A program made the translations under genes and the position numbers. From the NCBI GenBank assembly GCA_964188305.1, contig OZ076896.1: a DNA stretch of 64,000 bases; one strand, 5' to 3'. Shown in pieces: positions 43,534-64,000 of the stretch; the first letter of the stretch is position 1; each line of letters starts with the position of its first letter. The stretch comes from Podarcis bocagei (lineage: Eukaryota). The notes under the pieces are model-generated. The model saw nothing but the letters and a program-made list of their open reading frames with translations. It was not told the origin of the DNA and did no database searches.

Positions 43534-43745
43534 NNNNNNNNNNNNNNNNNNNNNNNNNNNNNNNNNNNNNNNNNNNNNNNNNNNNNNNNNNNNNNNNNNN
43601 NNNNNNNNNNNNNNNNNNNNNNNNNNNNNNNNNNNNNNNNNNNNNNNNNNNNNNNNNNNNNNNNNNNNNNNNNNNNNNNNNNNNNNNNNNNNNNNNNNNN
43701 NNNNNNNNNNNNNNNNNNNNNNNNNNNNNNNNNNNNNNNNNNNNN
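43534..43745. other. ZFR: 212-nt N-run, inferred to hide ZFR exon 16 (about 98 nt)
   Basis: Exon 15 ends in phase 1 and exon 17 starts in phase 0; the recalled segment [33 protein letters not shown] was not found in readable sequence between them. Confidence 0.8.
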
Positions 43746-49182: not shown

Positions 49183-50389
49183 AAAAAAGAAAAGAAAACT
49201 GTGTTTGGTGTTAACAGAGGCCATTTGTTCTCTGATTTTTTTCTCAATGTCTGTTAAATACATCCAAAAAAGTTAGAAAAATTACTTTTTGTGTGGCATT
49301 CACACCATTTTTTTTAGGATGTGCAGACTAATTATGGTAGAAAGAGATCACAAATGGAAACTATTCTGACTTCTAGCGGACCCCTCATTGTTTAGTTTCT
49401 AACTTCTAATGTATGATTCTTGTTTTCGCTTCTTTACGTTAAGTAGTACAACGTATACTTAAATTCCACTGTATTTAATACAGTGTTTTGTGCTTCAGTT
49501 GCTTTGTGTATTTTGCTCTTTTATTTAGAATTTTAAGTTACCATTGACGCAAGCTGTAAGTTGCTTTGTATTAGAAAATGGTAAATACAGTCCTTCACTT
49601 AATATTTTATAGAAGAACACTTTTTGTAAAGTGGGTCTGCAATATTATTTCTCCTAAATGTGAAGCGTTAACACAAACTTATCCTGCTATTTAAGTGCTT
49701 TCAATTAAATGTTTCCGCCAAATCCATGGCATTTGTCTCTTTAGTGATATAATGGTGTACTTAAGACAGATTTGTGTTACTCTAATCAGGTTTGTTGTTA
49801 GTTATGCATTAGCAGTATAAATGCTGAACATACACAGTTTGGATTTGCTGCAATTTTAGCAACTGCATAATTGATTTTAAAAATTGCATGACTTTGTTTT
49901 TAATAGAAGGGCTTTAAAAAAGTATCAATTTAGGTTTCATGCCTAGGTCTTTGTATGATTGACTTTGATATAGCAAGGCCAAAAAATAAATTTCTGAAAT
50001 TTTGCCGAAAACATTAAGAGGGCATTTTTCCCTTTGGGAAAGAGCTGGCTACTTGTTTTCAGAGAGCTTATCAGTATGGTAGCTCTGAATTAAAATAATT
50101 GTTTGCTATATCAGTGCCTGTGAGATTGCTCCTTTTGCTATTTCCTTACCAAATTATTCAGTAACTTTCATTTTAGGTCTACAACCTGAACGTAGATACC
50201 AATATTTCTGGAAATTTGAAGGTTGTAAAAGAAAATAGCAGAAAATTATTTGTGGCCATAGTGTATGCTTATGTCTCCTTCAAACAACTAAATATTATAG
50301 CAGTGCTGTAATTCAGGTCTACATCTGGCTGTTGATGTATGCTCTGGTACACAGATGTGATTTGTTACAACACTACAGTGGAGTCTGCA

Positions 50390-50395
50390 AATAAA
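50390..50395 (+). terminator. ZFR: Probable ZFR polyadenylation signal AATAAA (another at 49985-49990)
   Basis: Ends an AU-rich, repeat-free 1.2-kb 3'UTR; repeats resume after about 50600. Confidence 0.6.
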
Positions 50396-50609
50396 ACTAA
50401 AATCTATTAAATGACTTAACGTTCATTATACACTGAGAACATGCACTTTGCTTTGTCTTTCTGAGTGGATTATGCTAGTTTTCAGCACATAGATTTAACA
50501 CTGGCAACCAGTGGTGTCCATCCGCCAATGGAATAGATTTCCACAGTGGCAGCTTCCCTTTCCTCCCTTCCTCCCCCCAAATCTGCTACAGATTCATCCA
50601 TCCGAACCA

Positions 50610-50840
50610 ATTACAAGAAAGGAGATTCTGACTAAACATCAGGAAGAACTTTGACAGTAGGTGCTGTTCAACAGTGGAACAGACTCCCTTGTGAGGTGGT
50701 GGACTTTCCTTCTTTGGAGGTTTTTAAGCAGAGGTTGGATGGCCATCTGTCATGGATGCTTTCGTTGAGATTCCTGCATTGCAAGGGGTTAAACTATATG
50801 GCCCTTGAGGTCCCTTCCAACATATAAAATATGATTCTGT
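50610..50840 (+). mobile_element. CR1 LINE 3' fragment
   Basis: AAACATCAGGAAGAACTT...GGAGGTTTTTAAGCAGAGGTTGGATGGCCATCTGTC...CCCTTCCAAC typical of the CR1 3' end. Confidence 0.8.
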
Positions 50841-51136
50841 AGGGTTGAGGGAGACCCTCCAGACCAGACTGTAGAGGAGGTTGCAGTAAGTGGGCACCCA
50901 CGTGATATTTATGTTGCCCAGTGTTCTTAAAATTTCTTGAGAAATAGGAAATTGTAAATGGTTGCCTGATTTAATCAGAGACTGCCATGTTCTGGCGCTC
51001 TTCAATTTTTGATAATTGCAAAGCCTTCAGGCTGTATTTGTTCTAAATTCTTAACATTCATTAACAGACACGTAAGTGCAATATATTGTACAAAGGGGGA
51101 ATTATCAAAGCTGAATCTTTTGAGCCATTATGACTA

Positions 51137-51351
51137 CAGTGGTACCTCGGGTCACAGACGCTTCAGGTTACAGACTCCGCTAACCCAGAAATAGTACCTC
51201 GGGTTAAGAACTTTGCTTCAGGATGAGAACAGAAATCGTGCGGCAGCAGCAGGAAGCCCCATTAGCTAAAGTGGTACCTCAGGTTAAGAACAGTTTCAGG
51301 TTAAGAACGGATATCCAGAACGAATTAACTTCTTAACCCAAGGTACCACTG
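51137..51351 (+). mobile_element. Tc1/mariner MITE family A
   Basis: CAGTGGTACCTCGGG / AGGTACCACTG with TA flanks; close to 897-1122. Confidence 0.88.
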
Positions 51352-54300
51352 TATACCTAAATTATTAAATTTTATTCTCATTTAAGATTTGATGCATCAT
51401 ATTTGCTAGCAGATTGTTGTGAGAGTACCTGGACGTAGTCAGTTTTGGTAGCACAGAGACTTCAAATGCTGCTGGTTGTGATCTGAGTGTAAGGGGACTG
51501 GGATGTTTTTAGAAGCGCACCCCTTTTCTAATCATGGGGCATTTTTCTATCTTAGGCCACATAGCATGTTGCTACTCTTTCCCCCCCCCCCCAAAAAAAA
51601 AAATCTGTGGTCACATATTTCCATGTCTTCACATTTCTCTTTTCAGCCTTCACATTATCCTGTGTGCTGCTGCTTCAGCATTGTGACAGTGGAAGAACAT
51701 CTTTAAATGATTTTTTCCAACATTCATGCACTATAATAATACATGCAGGTTGTAGTGTGTTTTTATGCACAGCATTTGGATTTTAGGCCAAAGTTCTGTT
51801 TATTTTTAACAGAGTATGCTAAACATTGGCCCATCATTTAAGACAGTGTTGGTAACCCGAGCAAGAATTAACAGTGCAATCTTCTACATGACAATTTGGG
51901 GGGAAGTCCTATTGTGCTTAATGGGCCTTGCATTCCTTCCCATGACTACCAGTCTGGGTAGGCCAGTTGTGCCAAAGGCACTTAAGTAGGTTGTCACCAC
52001 TCCTGCTTGGGCTCCCTCTACCCCCAGATGGGAGCATTTTTATGAATCTGAGGCAAATACTTAGGAGGGGAGGCTGAAAGCACCCAGCCTACCTGGCTGT
52101 CCCCTGAGCCCAATGTAGCTTGTTTTTACTCTGTCACCCCCCCCATAGCATGAACCAAATCATTTTAGGCATTGGGGGGGGGATGTCAACTGAGGGAACA
52201 TACCCAAGACTGCAACAGCCTAGTTTATGATGAAAAAGACGGAACAAACAAGAGGAGGCCAAATGTTGCTTCAAGAAAATGCAAAGAACCTATACTGTTG
52301 CATCTGCTTACAAAAACTTGTGGTCTCATGTTGCAGAATAGATGGTCAGCTGAGGGACTTTGGAGGACAAAGGACAGTTGGGCAGTGATCATTGAAATTA
52401 TTTCTGATCCAGGTGGGGAGACTGAAACCTTTCGGAGGTTAGGTGATGGACTATCAAGGTGTTAACTACTGCATCTTCCTGCGAAATGGAGACTATTCTG
52501 TGCTTTGTATATTCTAGAGGAGATGTTCTCTGGTATACTCTGGGTTCACCTCCAGGTAAGGGTACAGGACTGTAGCCTAAGTTTTAAGTACGCTGTTTCC
52601 AGATTCCAGTAGAATGAGAACAAGATTTTCAAGGTGATAAACATTTTTTAACTGCTGGAGAAATTTCTCGTTAACCAGACCTCATCTGTTTTAAGTAATC
52701 CTACCTGAGTAAAACTTTGACTTGACTTACTTGCCAGTTTAATAAGTCAATTTCAGACATAATGGCTGCTGTTCAGGAAACAAAGGCTGGACATCTGATA
52801 ATATTACAGTGCTATTATGTACTGCTTGATAAGAGGCACTATGGTGCAAGTCTTATCAGGGTCATGTTCTGTGATGCAAAAGCTTTACCTGTTGGAGGGA
52901 AAGGCATTTTGCATACATTCAGGTGTATTACTGCACACATTCCAGGACTGAGCTCTTGGTACTCGTGACTCAGCTTAAGATTTATGATTTCTGTTATTCT
53001 TCCTAGTGCTACTTAGGATCAGATTGTTATCCAACACAAATGTCTCCTCCCAACAAATCCTGAACCACTGTTTGTACTGCCAGCAGAGACAGGCAGTATC
53101 ATGTTTGATAATACCATTTAATAAACTACATGAAACACCCAGCTTTCCCTTAATATATTGGGCATCATGAAATCACTCAAGGGACCAAATTATTTAAAAC
53201 TTCTGTTATATGTCTTCTTTTTTCCCATGATTGTTCTTACTTTATAAGTATTTCTTCCTGTTCCCATAACTTCCTAATTGGCTCTTTCTTGGTTGGTTTC
53301 TTTTTTAACTCTTCCAACGTCTGGCATACAAATTCCCTGCTAGAGTTAAGTATATAAAGCAGGCGTGGAAAACCTTTGTTCCCCCAAATGTTGTTGAACT
53401 ACAATTCCCATCATCTGGCCATCAATGAGAGACATTGTTATAGATGGCATAAGGTTGGGGAAAAAGAGAAGTAGGGAGAGAGAAAGTGAGAGAAGGTTGT
53501 GGTAGCAAACATTCGTTCTTTTGCATAAATTGATAATTTGTTTTACAAAGGCTCTTTGCCAACAGGGTGACATTCAGTCTTTGTATTTCTAATTAAAAGT
53601 GAAAACATCTTACACATCCTATCCACTCCCAAACAGCTGAAAGTCTCTCAAACAACCTTCTAAACAGCTGGGGCAATTAATTCAAAATTAATCAGCTGCT
53701 GAGCTATTAATTGGGACCAGGTGTTACAAACACATCTCACCTGGGCTAGAAGACTTCTGTTTCAAAGCAGAATTGATTTACTTACCATTAACCCCCTAGA
53801 TTAGGGATGGAGAAACTTTGACCTTTGAGGTATTGTTGAACTACAGCTTTCCATAATTATTGGCCATACTAGCTGGAAGCCCAGCTGATGGCAGTTGCAG
53901 CCCAAGAATCTTACAACCTGAGTAGTTGAATGAGCACCTGCAATTATCAACCTGTCAACACACAGCATTAAAATCTTAAAGAGGCCCCCTTCTGAGTGCT
54001 TTACATAATTTTTTCAACTGGCACTTTACAGCAGCGGGGGTGGGTGTGTGCGCGCGCACGGGGTGGGGGGTGGGGACGGGACATTATTTCCTCAGTTTTA
54101 TTATTGTAAAGTGTTCATTAGTTATTGCAAACAACCCTGGAAATACTTGTATGGAAGAGCAGTATAGATATCATTAAACAGGAATGTAGTAGTTGTTGTT
54201 GTGTGTGTTTGTTTGTGTGTGTGGTTTTGTTCTTATTGCTTTGATTTGCATCCTTATTGCACCCTTATTGCACCATAAGGCTATTCTACCTCCCCTGCTG

Positions 54301-54384
54301 GTGTTCACAAGTGGCGAGAATGCTTTTGCACTCACAATGTGTTTGTGGGCTTCCCATAGATGTTGGTTGGCCAGCCTGAAAAGG

Positions 54385-54695
54385 GAGAGTTACAAGGGAC
54401 CACAAGGGTCATCTAGTACAACCCCCTGCGATGCAGGAATCTCAACTAAAGTTTGCTCCATCCTCTCTATGTGACAGCCCTTCAGATATTTGAAGATGGC
54501 CATTATATCTCTTCTCAGTCTCCTCTTTTCCAAGCTAAACATGCCCAGCTCCTTCAAACATTCCTCCTAAGGCTTGGCTTCCAGACTCTCGATCATTTTG
54601 GCTGCCTTCCTCTGCACACGCCCCACCTTGTCAATATCCTTCATCATTCGTAGCGCCCAGAACTGGTCACAGCACTCCAGTGTGGTTTGCCCAAG
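54385..54695 (-). mobile_element. CR1 LINE 3' fragment
   Basis: Minus-strand translation QFWALR..KDIDKVGRVQRKAAKMI resembles the CR1 ORF2 C-terminus. Confidence 0.78.
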
Positions 54696-54929
54696 GCAGA
54701 AGGATACTAACATTTCCCATAACAATTTAAAACAAACACTTTGCATCTGATTTTGGTTTTGGGTTCCTGGAAATTTTATAGTCGCACACAACTTTACAAA
54801 CCGTGCAACTTAAATTTGCATTATGATAAACTAGATTTGCGTGCGGCGGCACTACAGTTAATACAGCTCAGATTTCCAGGCGGTGGGGGGGAGGGGGACA
54901 AGGAAATCACCTCTCCTTTTAAGCCGTTC

Positions 54930-55620
54930 CGTCAGTCATTTGCTGATTGGGTAACGTATCTGTCGTTCAGCCCTCGGATTTTTTTATTTATCTAATAAAT
55001 ATTGTGATTGGTCTCATGACACTTTTCCCCACCCCTTTTTTTATGTGAACGACCATTCCCTGCAAAGCGAGCGAGAAAGGGCGGGGCGAATAGGCGGGAC
55101 CTATTCCTGAGATCGACCTCCTGCCGGCCCAATGGCGGCGCGGATGGCTGGGCGGAGCTCGTGCATTAATAGGGCGGGGGGAGAGGCTCACGTGCGCCGC
55201 CGCCGGGACTGTGGGCTCTTGCCGCTCGCTGCGATGGGAGGGATTAACTACGTGAGGCGAAGCAGGGCGGCGCTGGAGGACGACGACGACGCCGCGGAGT
55301 CCTCCTGGGAGGAGCTGCCGACGCCGCCCTCGCCCGCCGGCACCGGCCGGAGCCCTGGCTGCGCCGCCGCTGCCGGGAGTTCGCGGGGGCCAGACATGCT
55401 GGGCGCGGGGGGCGGCGCGGGGGCCAGGCCGGCCAAGCCCTCCTTCGTCTCCTATATCAGCCCGGAGGTAGGTCGGGCACTGAGGGGACCAGGCGAGGCG
55501 GTTGGTCTGAGAGGAAGGGAGGGCGCGCGGGTGGGGCTGGCTGGCTGGCGGCGCGCGGGACGAGGAGGGAGTGAGGAGGAGAAGGCGGCGAGGTGGGCCG
55601 GCGTGGGAATGGGGTCCTCC
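54930..55620 (+). promoter_or_regulatory. MTMR12: MTMR12 CpG-island promoter
   Basis: CpG-rich; inverted CCAAT boxes (ATTGG near 54946 and 55007), CCAAT at about 55129, several GC boxes. Confidence 0.85.
55396..55467 (+). CDS. MTMR12: MTMR12 exon 1 conserved coding part: MLGAGGGAGARPAKPSFVSYISPE (possible in-frame extension from ATG 55234)
   Basis: Resembles the recalled MTMR12 N-terminus MLG...KPSFVSY..PE; GAG|gtaggt donor; synteny with ZFR. Remaining exons are apparently outside the window. Confidence 0.9.
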
Positions 55621-56051
55621 AGGGCTATTTACAAATATATATAGAAGACCCGAGATGGAGAAACAAACGCCGGTCTAAGCTTTTGTGGAATAAATAAGGA
55701 CGTCTATTAAAAATAATAATAACGGAAAATAAGGATTGAAAAAGTATTAATAGCGTTATTAAAAGTGCGCTTTGTCAGGAGCAGACACTCTCAAGGTGTG
55801 TGCATGTGTGTGTATATATATATATATTTGTAAATATCTCTGGAGGACCCCATTCCCACGCCGGCCCACCTCGCCCCCTATATATATATATATATATATA
55901 TACATATATACACACACACCCTGACAAAGTGCACTTTTAATAACACTATTAATATTTTTTAAATGCTTATCTTCCGTTATTACTATTTTTAATAGACCTC
56001 CTTATTTATTCCACAAAAACTTAGACTGGCGTTTTTCTCAGTCTTGGGTCT
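55587..56051. repeat. Crossed inverted duplication A-B-a'-b' with (TA)n junctions
   Basis: 55587-55643 is the reverse complement of 55821-55875; 55646-55779 is an imperfect reverse complement of 55920-56051. Confidence 0.88.
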
Positions 56052-56193
56052 CGAAACCCATGACAGATTAATCTTCAGGTCTCTTAGAAGAGTTGCTTCT
56101 TTCAGGTGCTGCGAAGTTGGGTCGGTGGTCCCTGCTTTATTTGCAGAGTATGTGCCCCTCACAAGTGAAGTTTTTTTTATATAAAAAACAACC

Positions 56194-56320
56194 ATAGAAC
56201 TATAGCGTTGGAAGGGTTCCTCCCCCCCCCAGGGTCATCTAGTCCAACCCCCTGCAATGGAGAAGTAGGCATGTGGCCCATTTGGGGATTGAACCCGCGA
56301 CCTTGGCGTTATCAGCAGGA
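56194..56320 (-). mobile_element. tRNA/CR1-tail SINE (Squam/POM-type), 5'-truncated
   Basis: Similar to the 29053 element; GGGATTGAACCCGCGACCTTGGCGTTATCAGCA. Confidence 0.65.
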
Positions 56321-58381
56321 CGAGGCTTCCACAGAAGTCTAACCATGATAATAAACCTTGTGTTGGTGACGCCTCAAGACTTTTGCTTTTTAGGATAACA
56401 ATACATTGCTTTTTCCTGTTTGTAGGTTAGTGTACCTGCTGTGAAGTTCGGTCAGTGGTGTGCTTTCACTCTCACAATCCCTCCCCACTGTTTTGCGTTG
56501 AGGGGAGGAGGGTGGGGCAGTCACCAAGTGTGCAAGGAGGAGAATTTGTCAGCATGTGTGGTGCTTTGTACAGTGAAAGTCCCTGCCGCAGGAGCTTAAA
56601 AGCTTACTCGATGGGAAGGGGGGGGGGGGAGAAGGTAACAGCAGTGGGAGGAGGAGAAAATGGGAAGAGAATAAAAAGGATAAATTTAGTTTTTGATGAT
56701 GTTAAATTACTGGGGGTTTTGATATATATTTTTTAACTGCACAAAACTAAAAGCATTGAAACCATGAAATATTTTACATCTTGATAGTAGCTGGTCATAT
56801 CTATGCTCATGTTGGTGTGTTTCCAACAAAAACAAGTGTAGTCGTTGAATAATAATAATGGGTTTTAAAAAATACATTGGGTTGGTGAAGTGCCCCTGTT
56901 GAAGCTTCATATTTAACCATTAGCTTGATACCAGCTTTCCTACTGTGGTCGAAGTAAGGCCCTGCCTAACTATGTGTTTACTCAGTACCAAGCTCCCCTG
57001 AGCTCACTGGGACCTACTTCCAGGTAAGGCTGCTTAAAGGGTTGTAGCCTTACTGTCCAAATATTCTTTGTTGATACAGAGAGGCTAGTTTCTCCCTGTA
57101 ACTCTTCATTTTAAAATATGTCAGCCTTTATATACTTGGGATGAAATAAGGTCAATTTTAAGTTTGCATTTTCTGAATGCTGCCAAGGTATGTCAGAACA
57201 GTTTAACTTTGGTGAAGTGGTGTGACTCAAGCCTGCATGGGATAGTCTTGCATTTTGTTCCTTAAGGGATGTTTCCTGCTTTGCTCCCTCCAAGCTCCTT
57301 AAATCTGAGTTGGGTGCAGGCTAAAGTAGCATTGTGAGGAAAGGACTTCTATATGCGTGTAGTATATTGATTTGTAGTTACAGTAAAGCACCTGTTGCTG
57401 TGACAAAAGTAGGTGAGGAAGGAAGCCTTGTCTAGTGCAATGCACTCAGTGGGCTTTATATTTCCACTGTCAAGAGGAAGTCGGCCAGACTTTGCCATCA
57501 TTGTAAAAATAGCAATTTTCTATTTCCCATAAGAGTGAATAGCAGCCATTAATTACTATAAGGGGAATATATAGAAAAGGTGTGCACCTCTGATGGGAAT
57601 TAAACCTGCTCTCTGCCTGTGATGACCTCTGCCATTACAAATCAAATCTATCTGCAAAACTGCATTCTTGATTGTACTAAATATGATTGCATGTAGGACA
57701 AAAAACCTAATTAAAATTTTCTCTTCCGCCCTTCCCCTTTTAAACAGTAGCTTGGTCAGAGATGGGTGGTGCTATGTAGGTGTGGTTGGGATAGGATTTC
57801 TGAATATTCTCACCTCACATCACTAGGTGTAAGGCAGATGTAATTCTGTGGACTCCCTCTCAGAATTGCTTGGTTGCAATTAGGTTTGAAAGAAGCTTTG
57901 TAGGCATTTTTTCAAGCCTAATTGTGGCAAAGGGGGCTTTTTGTGGCGTAGAGAGGTGTGAAGAAAATAAGCTAACGCCTTAACCAGCTGTGCTCCTCCT
58001 GCCAAAAATGTCACCTATGCTACAGCTTGGCTTGAAAAAAAGCCTTCTGTTGGCTACAGTGCTCTTCCCCTGCTGCAATTAGGCTTTAAAATTCAAAATA
58101 AGTCCCAGTCCCGCCCCCATTCTTGAAGGGAGATGCTCTTCCTGTTGTTGCAATGTCCTTGAGGATTTTTCAGGTTCCCAAATGTGCTCACTACCCCCAA
58201 AAGCTGATATTTGGAAGTGTATGACAGAGCCAATGAAGAATGGTGTGAGAGTGGAGTGTTGAAAGCATTTCCTGCTTTTTAAAAAATGCCTGAGGAGCTT
58301 ATCATTAGGTAGACAGGTGTGCTGAGGGAGTTTAGTGAATTGAGGAGAGAAGGTTGTCTTTGGCAGGGAATTGTCTTTGGC

Positions 58382-58653
58382 AGAGGTGACGCGGGGCTGT
58401 AGAGGCTCCTGCCATAGCCGCGCGTCACCTCTCCAGCCGGGAGAGCGCGCGCGGGGCTAAAGCAGCCCCCCGCGACCCTCTCCCGGCTGGGGAGGTGACG
58501 TGCGGCTATAGAGGCTCCTGCCATAGCCGCGCGTCACCTCTCCAGCCGGGAGAGGGTTGCGGGGCTATGGCGTCTTCGCTCCATAGGACGCACACACATT
58601 TCCCCTTCATTTTTGAAGGGGAAAAAGTGCGTCCTATAGAGCGAAAAATACGG
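58382..58653 (+). mobile_element. Tc1/mariner-type MITE family C, one end missing, palindromic GC-rich interior
   Basis: Ends GTGCGTCCTATAGAGCGAAAAATACGG-TA, like 61794 and 62720. Confidence 0.8.
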
Positions 58654-60534
58654 TAACTTGCAACAAACTATTAACTACGTACGGAATCAAAGAGTAATAG
58701 GGGAATAGATGGTTTCAGATAACAGCTGCTGATGTAAGTGCACTGTAGGATTTTCCATCTCTTCTCAGACAGAGGCTGTATGTATTTTTGCTCAAAGGCT
58801 CATGGTATAGATTTATGTGTACAGCAATGTGTAGTAACTGCAAGCCTGTGACTTGTGCGTCTTCTAGATTACCTTTGTGAAGGGAGAATTGGGATTTTGT
58901 GCATATTGCTGCTTCCTGATTAGGCAGGTAGTGAGCCAACTGGTTTGACTGTGCATAGGAAAACATTTGCACTGAGAGAGTGTTAAGCGTGAGGTGGGTT
59001 TTAATAGGTAGGAAAGGTTATATTAATTGCAGTTTATCCCTCCAGGCCCCCATGTGTATGGGTTGAAGAGTTCTAAAAGTCCTATCCTTAGCAGCAAAAT
59101 TGAAGCATTTGGGTATTGGGCTGTAAAACCTTGTTTAGAGCAAGTCTAGTCATGAAGCTGGTTCTCCCTTTATTACCCCACTTAAAAAAGAATCGGACAG
59201 CAACTTATAAAGTAAGTGTAAGAATAAGATTTATAATCATGCAAAGGCAACAGTAAAAGCTATGCAGGCAAAATGCTTATATTTACAGTATAACCAGCCT
59301 CAGGCATATACCTAAAGCTGAGGCATGACTGCATCCAATGCTGGTCAAAGGAATAGAGAGAAGAGAGAGGAAATGCCCCTTCTCCACAGAGCCCTCCTTA
59401 CCATTGTATTTCTGTGGTCTGAGTATTTGCCTACAGCTCTGTGGTATTAGTTAGGTTTGGCTGATAATCTCCCACATTAAGCAGGTGCCAGTTAATCTTG
59501 TATTCCAAATTTAACAGCTAATGAATGACTTGTGACAGGTACCGGTATGTAAAGTTCCATATGGTGCTGTTGTGTACCAAGTGTGGTGAAGCTGAATAAT
59601 CGTCAGGAAAATATCCCTTGTTTCTTGCCAGAATACATTGAAAATTGCAGAGTTTAGAGTTATGGAAGATGTTGTAAGAAGCTACTTTTAAAAGAAATGG
59701 TGCCATGCTTCCAATTTGACGGGGGAAGAAAGCAGAAACAATGCTTTTACTTGCCAAAGTAATGAAAGCAGATACTTGAACTTGCCCTTCCGGCCAGTTC
59801 CATACTGGTTTTACTTGTTTATAGTTTCATTCTGCTTTGGCGTTAACTGAAGGACATTAAAAATGATTTGACTATCCCAAATAATTGTTATAAAAATACA
59901 ATTATCATTGTGCAGCGCTATTAAAATTTGGTGTTTGGGTTTGTTGGTTTAGTTATCTCCATGTTAATTTATACTGGAACAAAGACTAAATAGGAAACAA
60001 ATTTGGATAAAGTTTCCTAGTATCTAGTATATTGTATTTTTTTGGGGGGGGGGGTCAGGTCCTTCAGAGATAGCTTGCACAAAAGTATCATAAGCCTCAG
60101 ATGAGCTCAAAGTTATCCTGGGGGGAAAGTTCTATTTTCAGTTTTGTATGTACTGCAGGGAAAATTCCAAGGTTAAGTTGCATTCATTAAATGGGAGCAA
60201 GGTGGTGCTTGGGGAAAATCCCTGGGATAACTATGTTGTCAGACAACTCTTGTCAGGACACATTTTATGTTAGTTTCTAATGGAGTGTGAACTGTGGAGC
60301 ATTGCAAGCAATATGGCAGCTCCATTGACCTTGGGTACATTTTAAGATTATATGCTACTTCCATGAAGGCACATATGGTTTCTCCTGCTCTCATTTTATT
60401 TTCTCTACAATATCATTACAATTTTTTAGGCTTAGAGAGTGATCCTAGCCCAAGGTCACCCAGTGAGCTTCATGGTTGAGCAGACTACTCAACCCAGGGC
60501 TCCTTGTTCTAAGCCAAATACAGTGGTACCACCA

Positions 60535-60731
60535 TGTGGTGGGCTGGACTATATTTTTTGGAGGGAAATGAATGAATTCCTATGCCCCACAAATAATCCA
60601 GAGATGCATTTTAAATAAAAGCACACATTCTACTCATGTAAAAACACGCTGATTCCCAGACCGTCAACGGGCCAGATTGAGAAGGCAATTGGGCCGCATC
60701 TGGCCCACAGGCCTTAGGTTGCCTACCCCTG
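60535..60731. mobile_element. hAT MITE fragment
   Basis: Ends GGCCTTAGGTTTGCCTACCCCTG, complementary to a CAGGGGTAGGCAA-type TIR; other end not found. Confidence 0.6.
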
Positions 60732-61793
60732 GTCAAAACCAATGACATTACCAGGGATTACTGATAGCCAGGGTTACATATTCAAGATAGTTTCCATTAT
60801 TAGCTAAACACCTGGTTGGCATTACCCAAGTTAAATGGTGGGTGAAAGGATATGTTTCATCAGTTTTGCATTTCTGGTGTTTTATAATTCTAGTTGCAGA
60901 AAGACCTTATGATAAAAGTACAGTGTTTTTGAACTTACTGTTGCGTGTTGAATCTCAGCTACTTGTGAAGTAATGTCATTTCATCTATGAAAGCTAAACT
61001 AAGTGTAGGGAATTTCACATCCCCTGGAGTAGATACTATTAACTGTAAACACTCAACATTTTCCCACAATAAACAGTTCACTGCTATGCAAAGTTTAGTC
61101 TTTGCTGCATCTATATTTGGCTGATTTCCTGCTGCTTTGCAGCTTGGATTATGTCAAGGATTTTCTTTCTCTCTCTCTGGGTGTGGGTGTTTGCAGAGTA
61201 CCAAAATGTTTTAAAAACCAGCTAGAGCCTTCTTGCCAGGTAAAGAGAAGCTGATGATGCTGGACAATATTGACTTCAGCATGTATTGCCTGTCATGGCT
61301 TATCTTGCATTCTATTTATGATCTCTAAGGAGAATGTCTATATTTATGTAGACAAAGCAGTAGCACCTCCACCCAGGGAATTAATCATAGAAAACCAGGT
61401 TGGAGGGGCGTGGAAGTTAGTGCATGGAAAAGAAGGAAGAGACTCTAGCTATGAAGTATAAAGACAAAATCGGACTGCATAGGCCACTTCCTGCTTCATA
61501 CTGAAGCTATTTTAAAATGTTTCCGGGGCAGAGGTGAGAGCTGCCCATAAAAATAACGGAGAAATCCAAGATTTTAAAGCAGCTTTGGGATTTGTTATCC
61601 ACCCCAACCAAAATAACTGTGCAAGAGATAGCCACAAAGAGCTCTGTTCCTTCTCACTTTCTTAATTAGAATGAAACCCTTTAAATTAGAATCCTACTAC
61701 TGTAAATTTCAAAGCATGTAAAGTTTATTATATTACTGGTTTGAAGAAGCTTTGGATAGGAGAGAGTGCTTTACAACAGCCCTGCACTATATA

Positions 61794-62139
61794 CCGTATT
61801 TTTCGCTCTATAGGACGCACCGGACGATAAGACACACCTAGTTTGGGGGGGAGGAAACAAGAAGAAAAAAATTCTGAACCCCAGAAGCCAGAACAGCAAG
61901 AAGGATCTGGCTTCTCGGATAGCCTCTTGTTGTTCTGGCTTCGGGGACAGCCTTTGAAGTCTCTGCAGGGCAGCCACCCCCAAGCTAGAACAGCGAGACA
62001 GAGTGCTGTGCTGCGCTCCGTCTCCCTGTTCTGGCTTTGGGCTTAGCCGCACAGCCTGCAGTCGCTCCATAAGATGCACACACATTTCCCCTTACTTTTT
62101 AGAAGGGAAAATGTGTGTCCTATAGAGCGAAAAATACGG
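61794..62139 (+). mobile_element. Tc1/mariner-type MITE family C
   Basis: TIRs CCGTATTTTTCGCTCTATAGGAC / GTCCTATAGAGCGAAAAATACGG with TA flanks. Confidence 0.9.
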
Positions 62140-62719
62140 TAGTTAATACTGCAGCTCAGTCTGAGTGGTTTACAACAACCCTGCAGTATATTTTTGTAAG
62201 GATTGGTAAATGGTTAGCCTTTAAATCTGCAATACATTTATTTCTGCCCCTACTTGTAGTGTGTTTGGTACAGCCCAGAAGATGTGTAAATTGGATTTGC
62301 TAGCCACTTGTTAAATGCACTCGGAATAGCAGCTGTTTTCAGAAAAGGGAACTTGGAATCCAGATGTGTATTTATATATTTAAAGAATTTATGCACTTCC
62401 AAAAATGGATTAGTTATCTGATCATATATTCTGTTGCCTAATAGAATATGCATTCAAAGTTCTTGTCTTTTTGTTGGCTGTTTTTTAATCGGCTCCTGAC
62501 TATTGGGATGAATAACTCCACAATGTGCAAAGCTGACTTATGAACATCTAGAGACTGCACACTCGCTCTTTATGCAACTGCACATCTCAATATTGTGCAA
62601 CTTATTGTTTCAGCTGTCCAACTCTGAACCATTTCAGTCTTAGCAACCTGCATCCTGTTTTTCTTTGAAGCTTTTACCAATGCACCTTTTAGTTAAGGGA
62701 TCAAGAATATTAAGATTTA

Positions 62720-63278
62720 CTGTATTTTTCGCCCTATAGGACGCACTTTTTCCCCTCCAAAAATGAAGGGGAAATCTGTGTGCGTCCTATGGGGCGAATA
62801 CAGGCTTTCGCTGAAGCTTGGAGAGCGAGAGGGGTTGGTGCGCACCAACCCCTCTCGCTCCCCAGGCTTCAGGAAGCTATCAGCAAGCCTGGGGAGCCCG
62901 CGGGAGTTCCCGCAGGGCTCCCCACGCTGCGGATAGCAGCCTGCTGCACGGGGCGCGCTGAAGCAGAGCGCCCCGTGCTTCGGGCAGACATCGGCCAGCC
63001 CCACAAGCCTGGGGGACAGCAGGGAGGCGCAGCGCCGCCATACCGCTGTTCCCCAACCTGGTTTGGAGGCTGGCGCTTTGGAGAAGCGTGCTTCTCCCCA
63101 GCGCCAGCCCCACAAGCTCGGGGGACAGCGGGGAGGCGCAGCGCCGCCATACCGCTGTTCCCCGACCTGGTTTGGTTTCCCCGGCCTGGTTTTTTTTGGG
63201 GGGGGAATAAAGGAAAACATTTTTTCCTTTATTTCCCCCCCATAAAACTAGGTGCGTCCTATGGGACGAAAAATACGG
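62720..63278 (-). mobile_element. Tc1/mariner-type MITE family C (opposite orientation), hairpin-rich interior
   Basis: CTGTATTTTTCGCCCTATAGGACGCAC / GTGCGTCCTATGGGACGAAAAATACGG termini. Confidence 0.88.
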
Positions 63279-63522
63279 TGTTTTCAAATGACGTGTTTAA
63301 TTTTCATGCTACCTTTCATGCCTAAAGAGTGTCTAAAATATTTTTGCCCCGTTCTTGAGCTTAGGCTGTTCAGTTATATGACTCAAGTTCTTGCCTCTAC
63401 TCTTACTAGCTTATATACAGTATATGCTTTAACATGACATGCGTAAATTGACACTAGTAAACTTCTAGCTATACTTTTCTGGTACAGCTACAGCTCTTCA
63501 AACATGAAATAATACTCTAGCT

Positions 63523-64000
63523 CAGTGTTTCCCAACCACTGTTCCGCGGCACACTAGTGTGCCGCGAGATGTTGCCTGGTGTGCCGCGAGATGTTGCCTG
63601 GAGGGAGGCGGGCGAGTCGGGCGGCGAGAGGCGGGGCGGCGGTGGCGAGGAGAGGCCGCCCAGCGCGGGGCTCTCGCCGTCTGCCTGCCTGGCTGCCTGC
63701 GAGCTCGGCGGGCAGCGCCTCTGTCCGCAGCGCCCGCCTCGCGGCTCTCATTCCCTGCCCCTGCCAAAGCTCACCCAGCCAAGCCGCGCTCTCCTTCCTG
63801 CCTCGCTTTGCTGCCTCCTCCCCCCCTACCCCCAAAGCTTGGAGGTTCCCCGGCAAGGGGGAGGGAAAAAAATTGAAACTTACACTTTCGTGCGTCCCTC
63901 CCGGCGTGACGCTGCGCGCTGACGTCACCGGGCTGTAATGGTGGTGTGCCTCGAGATTTTTTTCATCAAACAAGTGTGCCTTTGCCCAAAAAAGGTTGGG
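63523..64000. mobile_element. hAT (Charlie-like) non-autonomous element, truncated by window end
   Basis: CAGTGTTTCCCAACC left TIR; window ends in GGTTGGG, the start of the matching right TIR; GC-rich interior. Confidence 0.8.

Follow-up and report, generated by a model that had tools for sequence, protein, structure and literature searches.

We analyzed a 64,000-nt window from Podarcis bocagei (contig OZ076896.1), which carries on its plus strand exon 1 of MTMR12. An ATG at 55234, which shares its frame with the canonical MTMR12 start further downstream at 55396, very likely opens a translated, selectively maintained extension, judging from codon composition and comparison across species. 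The best explanation, and a likely one, is that ATG 55234 is a genuine, ancestral MTMR12 start that yields a long isoform whose 54 extra residues are laid out like a disordered regulatory tail. A literature search found no paper describing the MTMR12 extension or its conserved SSWEEL motif.

The sequence encoded by 55132-55467 is 98% identical to the N-terminus of Podarcis muralis MTMR12 (XP_077792568.1), identifying it as exon 1 of the MTMR12 orthologue. The MTMR12 N-terminal pattern M-L-G-...-KPSFVSY-x-x-PE is present, RNA runs on into exon 2 (EVYVREATVK), and full-length MTMR12 relatives contain Pfam PF06602 and PF12578. Exon 1 ends at 55467, the GT donor begins at 55468 and intron 1 is in phase 0.

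ATG 55234 lies in the context GCTGCGATGGG, with G at both -3 and +4 (GCGATGG). The canonical ATG 55396 (GACATGC) follows 162 nt, or 54 codons, downstream in the same frame with zero stops between them. The original prediction had reported this strong-context, stop-free arrangement and a WEEL at 55306-55317 (W25-L28), and both proved accurate in letters and coordinates. The extension translates as MGGINYVRRSRAALEDDDDAAESSWEELPTPPSPAGTGRSPGCAAAAGSSRGPD, followed by the canonical MLGAGGGAGARPAKPSFVSYISPE; a tryptic peptide from it spans AALEDDDDAAESSWEELPTPPSPAGTGR. No further ATG lies between 55234 and 55396 in any frame. Upstream, the frame of 55234 is open as far as a TGA at 55108 and holds extra in-frame ATGs at 55132 and 55144. 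The parts of exon 1 and its surroundings are as follows.

55129-55133, plus strand: CCAAT box of the MTMR12 CpG-island promoter, holding ATG 55132; GCCCAATGGCGGC is identical in four squamates
55132-55233, plus strand: open frame 5' of the extension ATG, 34 codons, probably promoter and 5' untranslated region (5'UTR); annotated as coding in the Podarcis models
55211-55233, plus strand: minimal 5'UTR, the 5'-most transcribed bases, from the spliced RNA contig of run X1
55234-55272, plus strand: extension start and conserved N-terminal block MGGINYVRRSRAA; MGG[IV]NY is near-invariant in squamates and turtles
55273-55296, plus strand: variable acidic linker LEDDDDAA; about 6 to about 25 residues by species, always acidic and a multiple of 3 nt
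55297-55329, plus strand: conserved short linear motif ESSWEELPTPP with the core WEEL at 55306-55317; alignment A4 shows no change at W, L or P29/P31/P32
55330-55395, plus strand: fast-evolving Pro/Gly/Ser/Ala-rich linker up to the canonical Met; dN/dS (omega) about 1.2, poor alignment, indels multiples of 3
55396-55467, plus strand: canonical MTMR12 start and remaining exon 1 (MLGAGGGAGARPAKPSFVSYISPE); matches orthologues of all amniotes examined, omega 0.15
55468-55469, plus strand: GT donor of intron 1, phase 0; reads or contigs of all four RNA runs exit the genome here into GAGGTATATGTGAGGGAAGCC..., which encodes EVYVREA, the start of exon 2

Codon structure of the extension

The original prediction had cautioned that a GC-rich UTR may be stop-free by chance. 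That caution was warranted: 35% of dinucleotide-preserving shuffles of the 162 nt were stop-free, and all three frames are open after 55253. Both observations favor reading the stretch as an untranslated GC-rich 5'UTR that happens to be open in one lineage and to contain a WxxL by accident. Squamata and Testudines share the ATG, the frame and the motif, which contradicts this view, and we regard it as highly improbable. Codon-position G+C and cross-species conservation exceed chance, whereas openness alone does not.

G+C at the three codon positions is 0.69/0.70/0.87 in the extension, 0.62/0.67/0.96 in the canonical codons and 0.76/0.71/0.71 in the 123 nt upstream. At 10 loci the extension measures 162, 171, 192, 186, 162, 156, 180, 111, 117 and 183 nt, all multiples of three, alligator included. 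The ATG has G at -3 and +4 in 9 of 10 amniote loci. When the window was compared with Zootoca, the indels inside the extension were 3, 6 and 3 nt long; the upstream flank had indels of 1, 2, 2, 4, 7, 8 and 9 nt, and the intron had indels of 4 and 7 nt.

Distribution of the extension and its motif among amniotes

The extension is present in 14 squamate genera (geckos, skinks, lacertids, an amphisbaenian, iguanians, a monitor and snakes) and in three turtles (Lepidochelys, Chrysemys and Emydura). Its layout is MGG[IV]NY.RR.RA, a variable acidic linker and [DE]-S-S-W-E-E-L-P-x-P-P, with M1, W25 and L28 invariant. An exon-1 peptide word search of public read assemblies (Logan contigs) returned two genomic open reading frames (ORFs), one from a gecko (L001) and one from a snake (L002). 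These share MGG[IV]N..RR..SSWEELPTPP..MLGAGG..KPSFVSYISPE and diverge straight after the splice donor, reading through into the intron after SPE. A profile search against 1.84 billion representatives added Varanus, Crotalus horridus and one more distant ORF. Word searches from full-length Varanus led to models of Phrynosoma, Rhineura, Sceloporus, Anolis sagrei, Zootoca, Pogona and Lerista, and also of Crotalus tigris, Hemicordylus, Erythrolamprus and Paroedura. The squamate and turtle models from the word searches all start MGG[IV]NY and contain [ES][SA]WEEL, the Zootoca core being the variant WEQL; the turtle forms are EEAWEEL, EESWEEL and SESWEEL. Among the ORFs and gene models of squamates and turtles carrying the extension, no frameshift or loss of the ATG was found. 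To judge from these sequences, lizards, snakes and turtles have kept the extension for about 280 million years, an age taken from general knowledge of the lepidosaur-archelosaur split (roughly 280 million years ago).

Archosaurs and mammals present a different picture. Alligator has an in-frame MGGVSD... 37 codons upstream of the canonical start, without the W motif, and its gene model skips the extension. Passerines read MGGVGSVMRI... without WEEL. In a contig from a non-passerine bird (L003 3277-3522, SRR33714321), EEEPWEVVPPP is in frame with the canonical start and the ATG is replaced by GAG; that contig has other in-frame ATGs 51-111 nt farther 5'. For mammals, the match list held primate and other MTMR12 proteins, and a few non-human N- and C-termini were aligned. 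Marsupial models start MGGVNGV... and retain only a motif remnant, W...PPP. Remnants with W and PPP read RWEPPP in Melospiza and WGWAEPPP in Sarcophilus. The in-frame MGG starts of alligator, passerines and marsupials suggest that the start codon of the extension is probably ancestral to amniotes. The motif itself, like the extension as a whole, goes back to the squamate-turtle ancestor or earlier; start codon and motif alike have decayed in archosaurs and mammals. The ATG, frame and WxxL singled out in the original prediction are therefore kept in 14 squamate genera and three turtles, but the motif is gone in alligator, in mammals and largely in birds.

Purifying selection in the claimed frame

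Selection was estimated with a GY+F1X4 codon model on a fixed accepted tree of seven taxa (six squamates and a turtle). For two conserved blocks, omega was 0.31 in frame (likelihood-ratio test against 1, p = 0.0014) and 1.48 and 1.40 in the shifted frames. The 24 canonical codons gave 0.15 in frame (p = 1.2e-6) and 4.6 and 2.3 in the shifted frames. Within the two conserved blocks, then, indels keep the frame and dN/dS falls below 1 in no frame but the claimed one, as expected under purifying selection.

Several points count against a translated, selectively maintained extension. The two blocks were picked after the alignment had been seen. Over the whole ungapped extension omega rises to 0.64 (p = 0.046), and outside the two blocks it is about 1.2, not significant and near-neutral. 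In squamates the motif codons hardly vary, third positions included, and less so than the canonical codons, which hints at added constraint at the nucleotide level. Species were mostly reached through ORFs or gene models; since those frames were already open, the census is skewed toward intact extensions. Canonical-Met starts are given for Varanus X1 and Tiliqua in RefSeq and for tuatara and Sphaerodactylus in UniProt. Finally, the motif is absent in mammals, most birds and alligator.

Some of these observations would fit another account, in which the conserved blocks are promoter-proximal or 5'UTR elements acting as DNA or RNA, the open frame is a by-product of high G+C, and the protein starts at 55396. 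Candidate elements are a downstream promoter element near GATGGGAGGG and the palindrome TCCTCC-TG-GGAGGA. Stop-free shuffles are common, as noted above, and the motif codons are near-identical at all three positions in six squamate lineages. GATGGG is kept in alligator, passerines and marsupials though the downstream peptide is not, raw reads of two RNA runs begin 3' of the ATG, and several annotation pipelines use the canonical Met. However, a nucleotide-level element does not account for the frame dependence of omega in the very same columns, nor for extension indels that are all multiples of three beside flank indels that are not. Periodicity in third-position G+C (GC3) begins exactly at 55234. 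Turtles alter the palindrome (GAGGAGGCTTGG) and other motif nucleotides yet keep an acidic residue or Ser followed by W-E-E-L. In the first block, the changes are I/V, R/K and S/N exchanges together with visible synonymous third-position changes (GGA/GGC, AGG/AGA, CGA/CGG). We therefore consider a purely regulatory origin of the conserved blocks improbable and favor a translated extension.

Promoter and transcript 5' ends

A CpG island covers 55000-55620 (GC 0.70, CpG observed/expected 0.95). The CCAAT element GCCCAATGGCGGC is identical in the P. bocagei window, gecko L001, snake L002 and Zootoca. The CCAAT box at 55129 lies 105 nt 5' of ATG 55234, a distance of 93-112 nt across the four squamates. 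CCAAT-to-ATG spacings of 105, 112, 93, 104, 133 and 121 nt differ by amounts that are not multiples of three.

For RNA evidence, 1041 bases of the locus were compared with four runs from one closely related Podarcis species; the reads derive from the plus strand. In run X1, a spliced 4552-nt contig spans 55211-55468 and continues into exon 2. It starts 23 nt before ATG 55234, so at least some mRNAs contain the AUG of 55234 (AUG1), with a 5'UTR of at least 23 nt. In X2 the contig begins at 55256, and the raw reads available from X23 and X24 (stranded, 27 reads in total) start at about 55295, with depth climbing from about 55300. No X23 or X24 read covers 55230-55264. The reads are few and coverage of 5' ends is always low, but the ramp is steep. 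This gap argues against a prominent long isoform: many transcripts may start 3' of ATG 55234, and the isoform may be minor or tissue-specific. The original prediction had hinged on where transcription starts relative to 55234; X1 places a start upstream, while X2, X23 and X24 leave the ATG uncovered. These data may fairly be read as a broad CpG-island promoter that initiates both before and after AUG1, a view that we hold loosely.

The RNA runs differ from the window at 55360 (T>A, Cys>Ser), 55371 (T>C, synonymous) and 55393 (G>A, Asp>Asn), the last being the -3 position of the canonical ATG 55396. Run X2 also has an in-frame GCT insertion after 55362, inside the Ala run.

We rejected ATG 55132 and ATG 55144 as real starts. 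They lie in or beside the conserved CCAAT box, their frame is not kept even in Zootoca, they show no GC3 periodicity, and the X1 contig begins 3' of both. Zootoca and the snake have the 55132-55233 stretch out of frame; in Zootoca the shift comes from a net 7-nt difference from the window in CCAAT-to-ATG distance. Most of the stretch lies 5' of the RNA contig end at 55211. A translation initiator of short 5'UTR (TISU) or YY1-type element at ATG 55234 was also considered; GCTGCGATGGGAGG lacks AA at -3/-2 and GCGGC after the ATG.

The SSWEEL motif

The original prediction had described WEEL as resembling an LC3-interacting region (LIR) or Atg8-interacting motif (AIM). The core [W/F/Y]-x-x-[L/I/V] is present as W25-E-E-L28, and all squamates and turtles with the extension have W and L at these positions (V replaces L in one bird). 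Acidic or phosphorylatable residues precede W in each form (E-S-S, D-S-S, E-E-A, E-E-S, S-E-S, E-E-P), and such residues before the LIR core matter for binding (PMC7615515). The extended LIR expression (xLIR; PMC5119064) is matched by the window, by 13 of the 14 squamate models that carry the extension and by two of the three turtles. SSWEEL also fits the FIP200-interacting region (FIR) consensus [DEST][DEST][FWYILV]-x-x-[ILV] with an acidic or phosphorylated -1 residue (PMC7615515), -1 being a Ser in a predicted CK2 context. Both S23 and S24 are S-x-x-E, or CK2-type, sites. The extension is 70% disorder-promoting residues with a grand average of hydropathy (GRAVY) of -0.78, a composition that points to disorder. 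AlphaFold2 on Zootoca residues 1-300 with a 26-row alignment gave a mean predicted local distance difference test (pLDDT) score of 37.6, poor throughout and uninformative on residues 1-98.

Weighing against ATG8 binding, Zootoca SSWEQL and Lepidochelys EAWEEL miss xLIR. The stricter canonical expression (cLIR), which calls for D/E at -2, is missed in squamates, where -2 is Ser, and is matched only in Chrysemys and Emydura (ESWEEL). LIR-like strings are common and often non-functional; LIR specificity is discussed in the iLIR paper (PMC5119064). The LIR-like description thus stands for the core, the acidic/Ser context, xLIR and FIR, but not for cLIR in squamates. That SSWEEL binds ATG8-family proteins is our leading functional hypothesis, put forward tentatively on pattern and conservation and at somewhat less than even odds.

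A quite possible alternative, also short of an even chance, is that the extension is translated but W-E-E-L-P-x-P-P serves another role: an ENA/VASP EVH1 ligand (LPTPP), binding to the FIP200 Claw only, a phospho-switch of the proline-directed or CK2 type, or a contact, intramolecular or facing MTM1, that adjusts the stability or localization of the complex. The EVH1 class I ligand pattern in ELM is [FYWL]P.PP. LPTPP fits it, and LPTPP or LPPPP occurs in all squamates and in Emydura. T30, S33 and S40 each precede Pro, and in alignment A4 P29, P31 and P32 vary no more than W25 and L28 do. The W and PPP remain in Melospiza and Sarcophilus, where the acidic LIR features are lost. The FIR match and the frequency of false-positive LIR-like strings are likewise compatible with a role other than ATG8 binding. 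Against such a role, [FYWL]P.PP is broken in two of the three turtles, Lepidochelys (LVLLPPP, in WEELVLLPPP) and Chrysemys (LVPPPP, in WEELVPPPP), while W-E-E-L and the preceding acidic/Ser residues are kept. Moreover, the substitutions at -1/-2 (S, E, A, P) and at +2/+3 (E, Q, V; L, V) are LIR-tolerated.

Two further candidates were set aside. The kinesin light-chain W-acidic pattern is [LM]-[DE]-W-[DE]; here -2/-1 is S-S and the pattern is missed, which also counts against a non-ATG8 role. N-myristoylation (PROSITE PS00008) requires Gly2 and a small residue (S/T/A/G/C/N) at position 6. Gly2 is present, but residue 6 is a Tyr in squamates and turtles other than gecko L001, which has Gln, and an Asp in alligator; none of these is in the permitted set, which makes myristoylation unlikely. 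The original prediction had rated Gly2 a weak myristoylation candidate, and Tyr6 agrees with that rating.

A proposed route from start choice to autophagic membranes

In the route that we propose, the CpG-island promoter would fire within a few tens of nucleotides of AUG1 and yield mRNAs with and without it. As there is no AUG between the two starts, leaky scanning could also make the short form. The tail of the long form would be built from the conserved cap MGG[IV]NY.RR.RA, the acidic variable linker, the SSWEEL-type motif and the fast-evolving Pro/Gly/Ser linker, which leads to the Met annotated as the start in mammals, most birds and alligator. The motif may act as a docking site, for which a CK2-type phospho-regulated LIR/FIR is the best match.

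A second predicted motif lies at the other end of the protein. DE[FY]VDL, within the last 30 residues (P0011, P0014, P0020, P0028, P0053 and others), fits xLIR in most amniote MTMR12 proteins checked, and the C-terminal motif of human MTMR12 is a LIR predicted by ELM (PMC11878207). Together, the two motifs could allow the MTMR12-MTM1 phosphatidylinositol 3-phosphate (PI3P) phosphatase complex to bind the ATG8 family or FIP200 on autophagic membranes. MTM1 is stabilized by MTMR12 (PMC3688503), and MTMR12 variants change autophagic clearance of the alpha-1-antitrypsin Z variant (PMC11407773). An ATG8 tether is coherent as an idea, its basis being pattern and conservation. That squamate and turtle MTMR12 is a bivalent ATG8/FIP200 adaptor, with an ancestral, CK2-switchable N-terminal LIR produced only from the upstream start and a pan-amniote C-terminal DE[FY]VDL, is speculative and, in our view, rather unlikely.

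If this were true, the choice of promoter or start would decide whether the MTM1-MTMR12 complex is recruited to phagophores. Birds, crocodilians and mammals would have lost the N-terminal site, a lineage-specific rewiring of the coupling between PI3P turnover and autophagy. How myotubularin phosphatases are recruited to autophagic membranes is poorly understood, and dead subunits such as MTMR12 are thought to target them. SSWEEL offers a candidate docking site that is short, sharply conserved and simple to mutate, and its decay in birds, crocodilians and mammals provides a natural loss series. The reach of the proposal is limited, as the motif is missing from mammals and binding is a prediction.

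Public gene models

The extension is not new to databases, being included in public automatic models such as Zootoca XP_034956247.2, Podarcis muralis XP_077792568.1, Lepidochelys kempii P0020 and the RefSeq and GenBank models of many squamates and turtles; no gene model points out the conserved motif. Model starts are inconsistent: the 55132-equivalent ATG in Podarcis, MGGINY in most species and the canonical Met elsewhere. The Podarcis models (XP_077792568.1, XP_053264449.1 and CAI5787724.1; 829-830 aa) take ATG 55132 as their start, which falls within the conserved CCAAT box, and are probably over-extended. In the 90% cluster of the Zootoca protein, Podarcis models are 96-98% identical to the window N-terminus. 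Version.1 of the Zootoca RefSeq protein has 739 aa and starts at the canonical Met; version.2 has 793 aa and starts MGGINY. The true reptile MTMR12 start is most likely MGG[IV]NY, and reptile models with a canonical-Met start are probably truncated.

Three entries are irregular. In the Crotalus horridus model KAL7989106.1 (P0004), extension residues 1-33 (through SSWEELPTPPTT) are joined to exon 2 without the canonical Met and KPSFVSYISPE, either through an alternative donor inside exon 1 or as a prediction artefact. The Anolis carolinensis model XP_008116818.2 (P0019) is frame-shifted: its residues 1-80 contain …GLLRLLHQPE, a +2-frame reading of the KPSFVSYISPE exon, and the Anolis sagrei extension is normal. 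A 52-aa JGI/IMG 'heme/copper-type cytochrome/quinol oxidase subunit 2' (P0127) falls in the 90%-identity cluster of Zootoca MTMR12 (P0011) and looks like a clustering oddity.

Other features of the window

In intron 1, at 55583-56000, a (TG)n(TA)n microsatellite sits within nested long inverted repeats. The repeat arms are 55583-55643 and 55819-55879 (61 nt, 95%), and 55699-55779 and 55920-56000 (81 nt, 90%). The left arm is found in Zootoca too, and the structure could represent an inserted palindrome or a microsatellite prone to hairpins. An Rfam scan of 50000-64000 returned zero matches. The sole run of N in the window is 43534-43745 (212 nt).

Comparison with known systems

A close parallel to the predicted motif is the TEX264 LIR, SSFEEL, which likewise has two Ser directly before aromatic-E-E-L, both in S-x-x-E context; the segment around the motif in MTMR12 is acidic and, from its composition, probably disordered. 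In TEX264, CK2 phosphorylation of both Ser is essential for ATG8 binding (PMC7615515). Unlike in TEX264 and other phospho-LIRs (NIX/BNIP3L, BNIP3, OPTN and FUNDC1), the aromatic residue in MTMR12 is W, not F. The MTMR12 motif also sits at the extreme N-terminus of a pseudophosphatase adaptor rather than in an ER or mitochondrial membrane receptor, its binding is a prediction, and apart from a relic in one bird it occurs in squamates and turtles only.

The yeast Atg19 and Atg34 AIMs (WEEL and WEEI) offer a second comparison, the four-residue core W-E-E-L of Atg19 being identical. In Atg19, a cargo receptor of yeast, the motif lies at the C-terminus. These proteins are not homologous to MTMR12, and the likeness is convergent at most.

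Within MTMR12 itself, the C-terminal candidate LIR, which is also predicted for other dead myotubularins (PMC11878207), belongs to the same predicted motif class. The two differ in distribution: the C-terminal motif is pan-amniote, whereas the N-terminal one lies upstream of the mammalian start and occurs in part of Sauropsida only. Both are predicted.

The arrangement of the two starts also resembles that of dual-start genes, with an in-frame upstream AUG in good context near the transcription start, no AUG between the two, and RNA 5' ends that flank AUG1. It differs from them in that the two MTMR12 protein forms are predicted and that AUG1 has the stronger context (-3 G, +4 G). This stronger context suggests that leaky scanning past AUG1 would be modest, unless the 5'UTR is very short.

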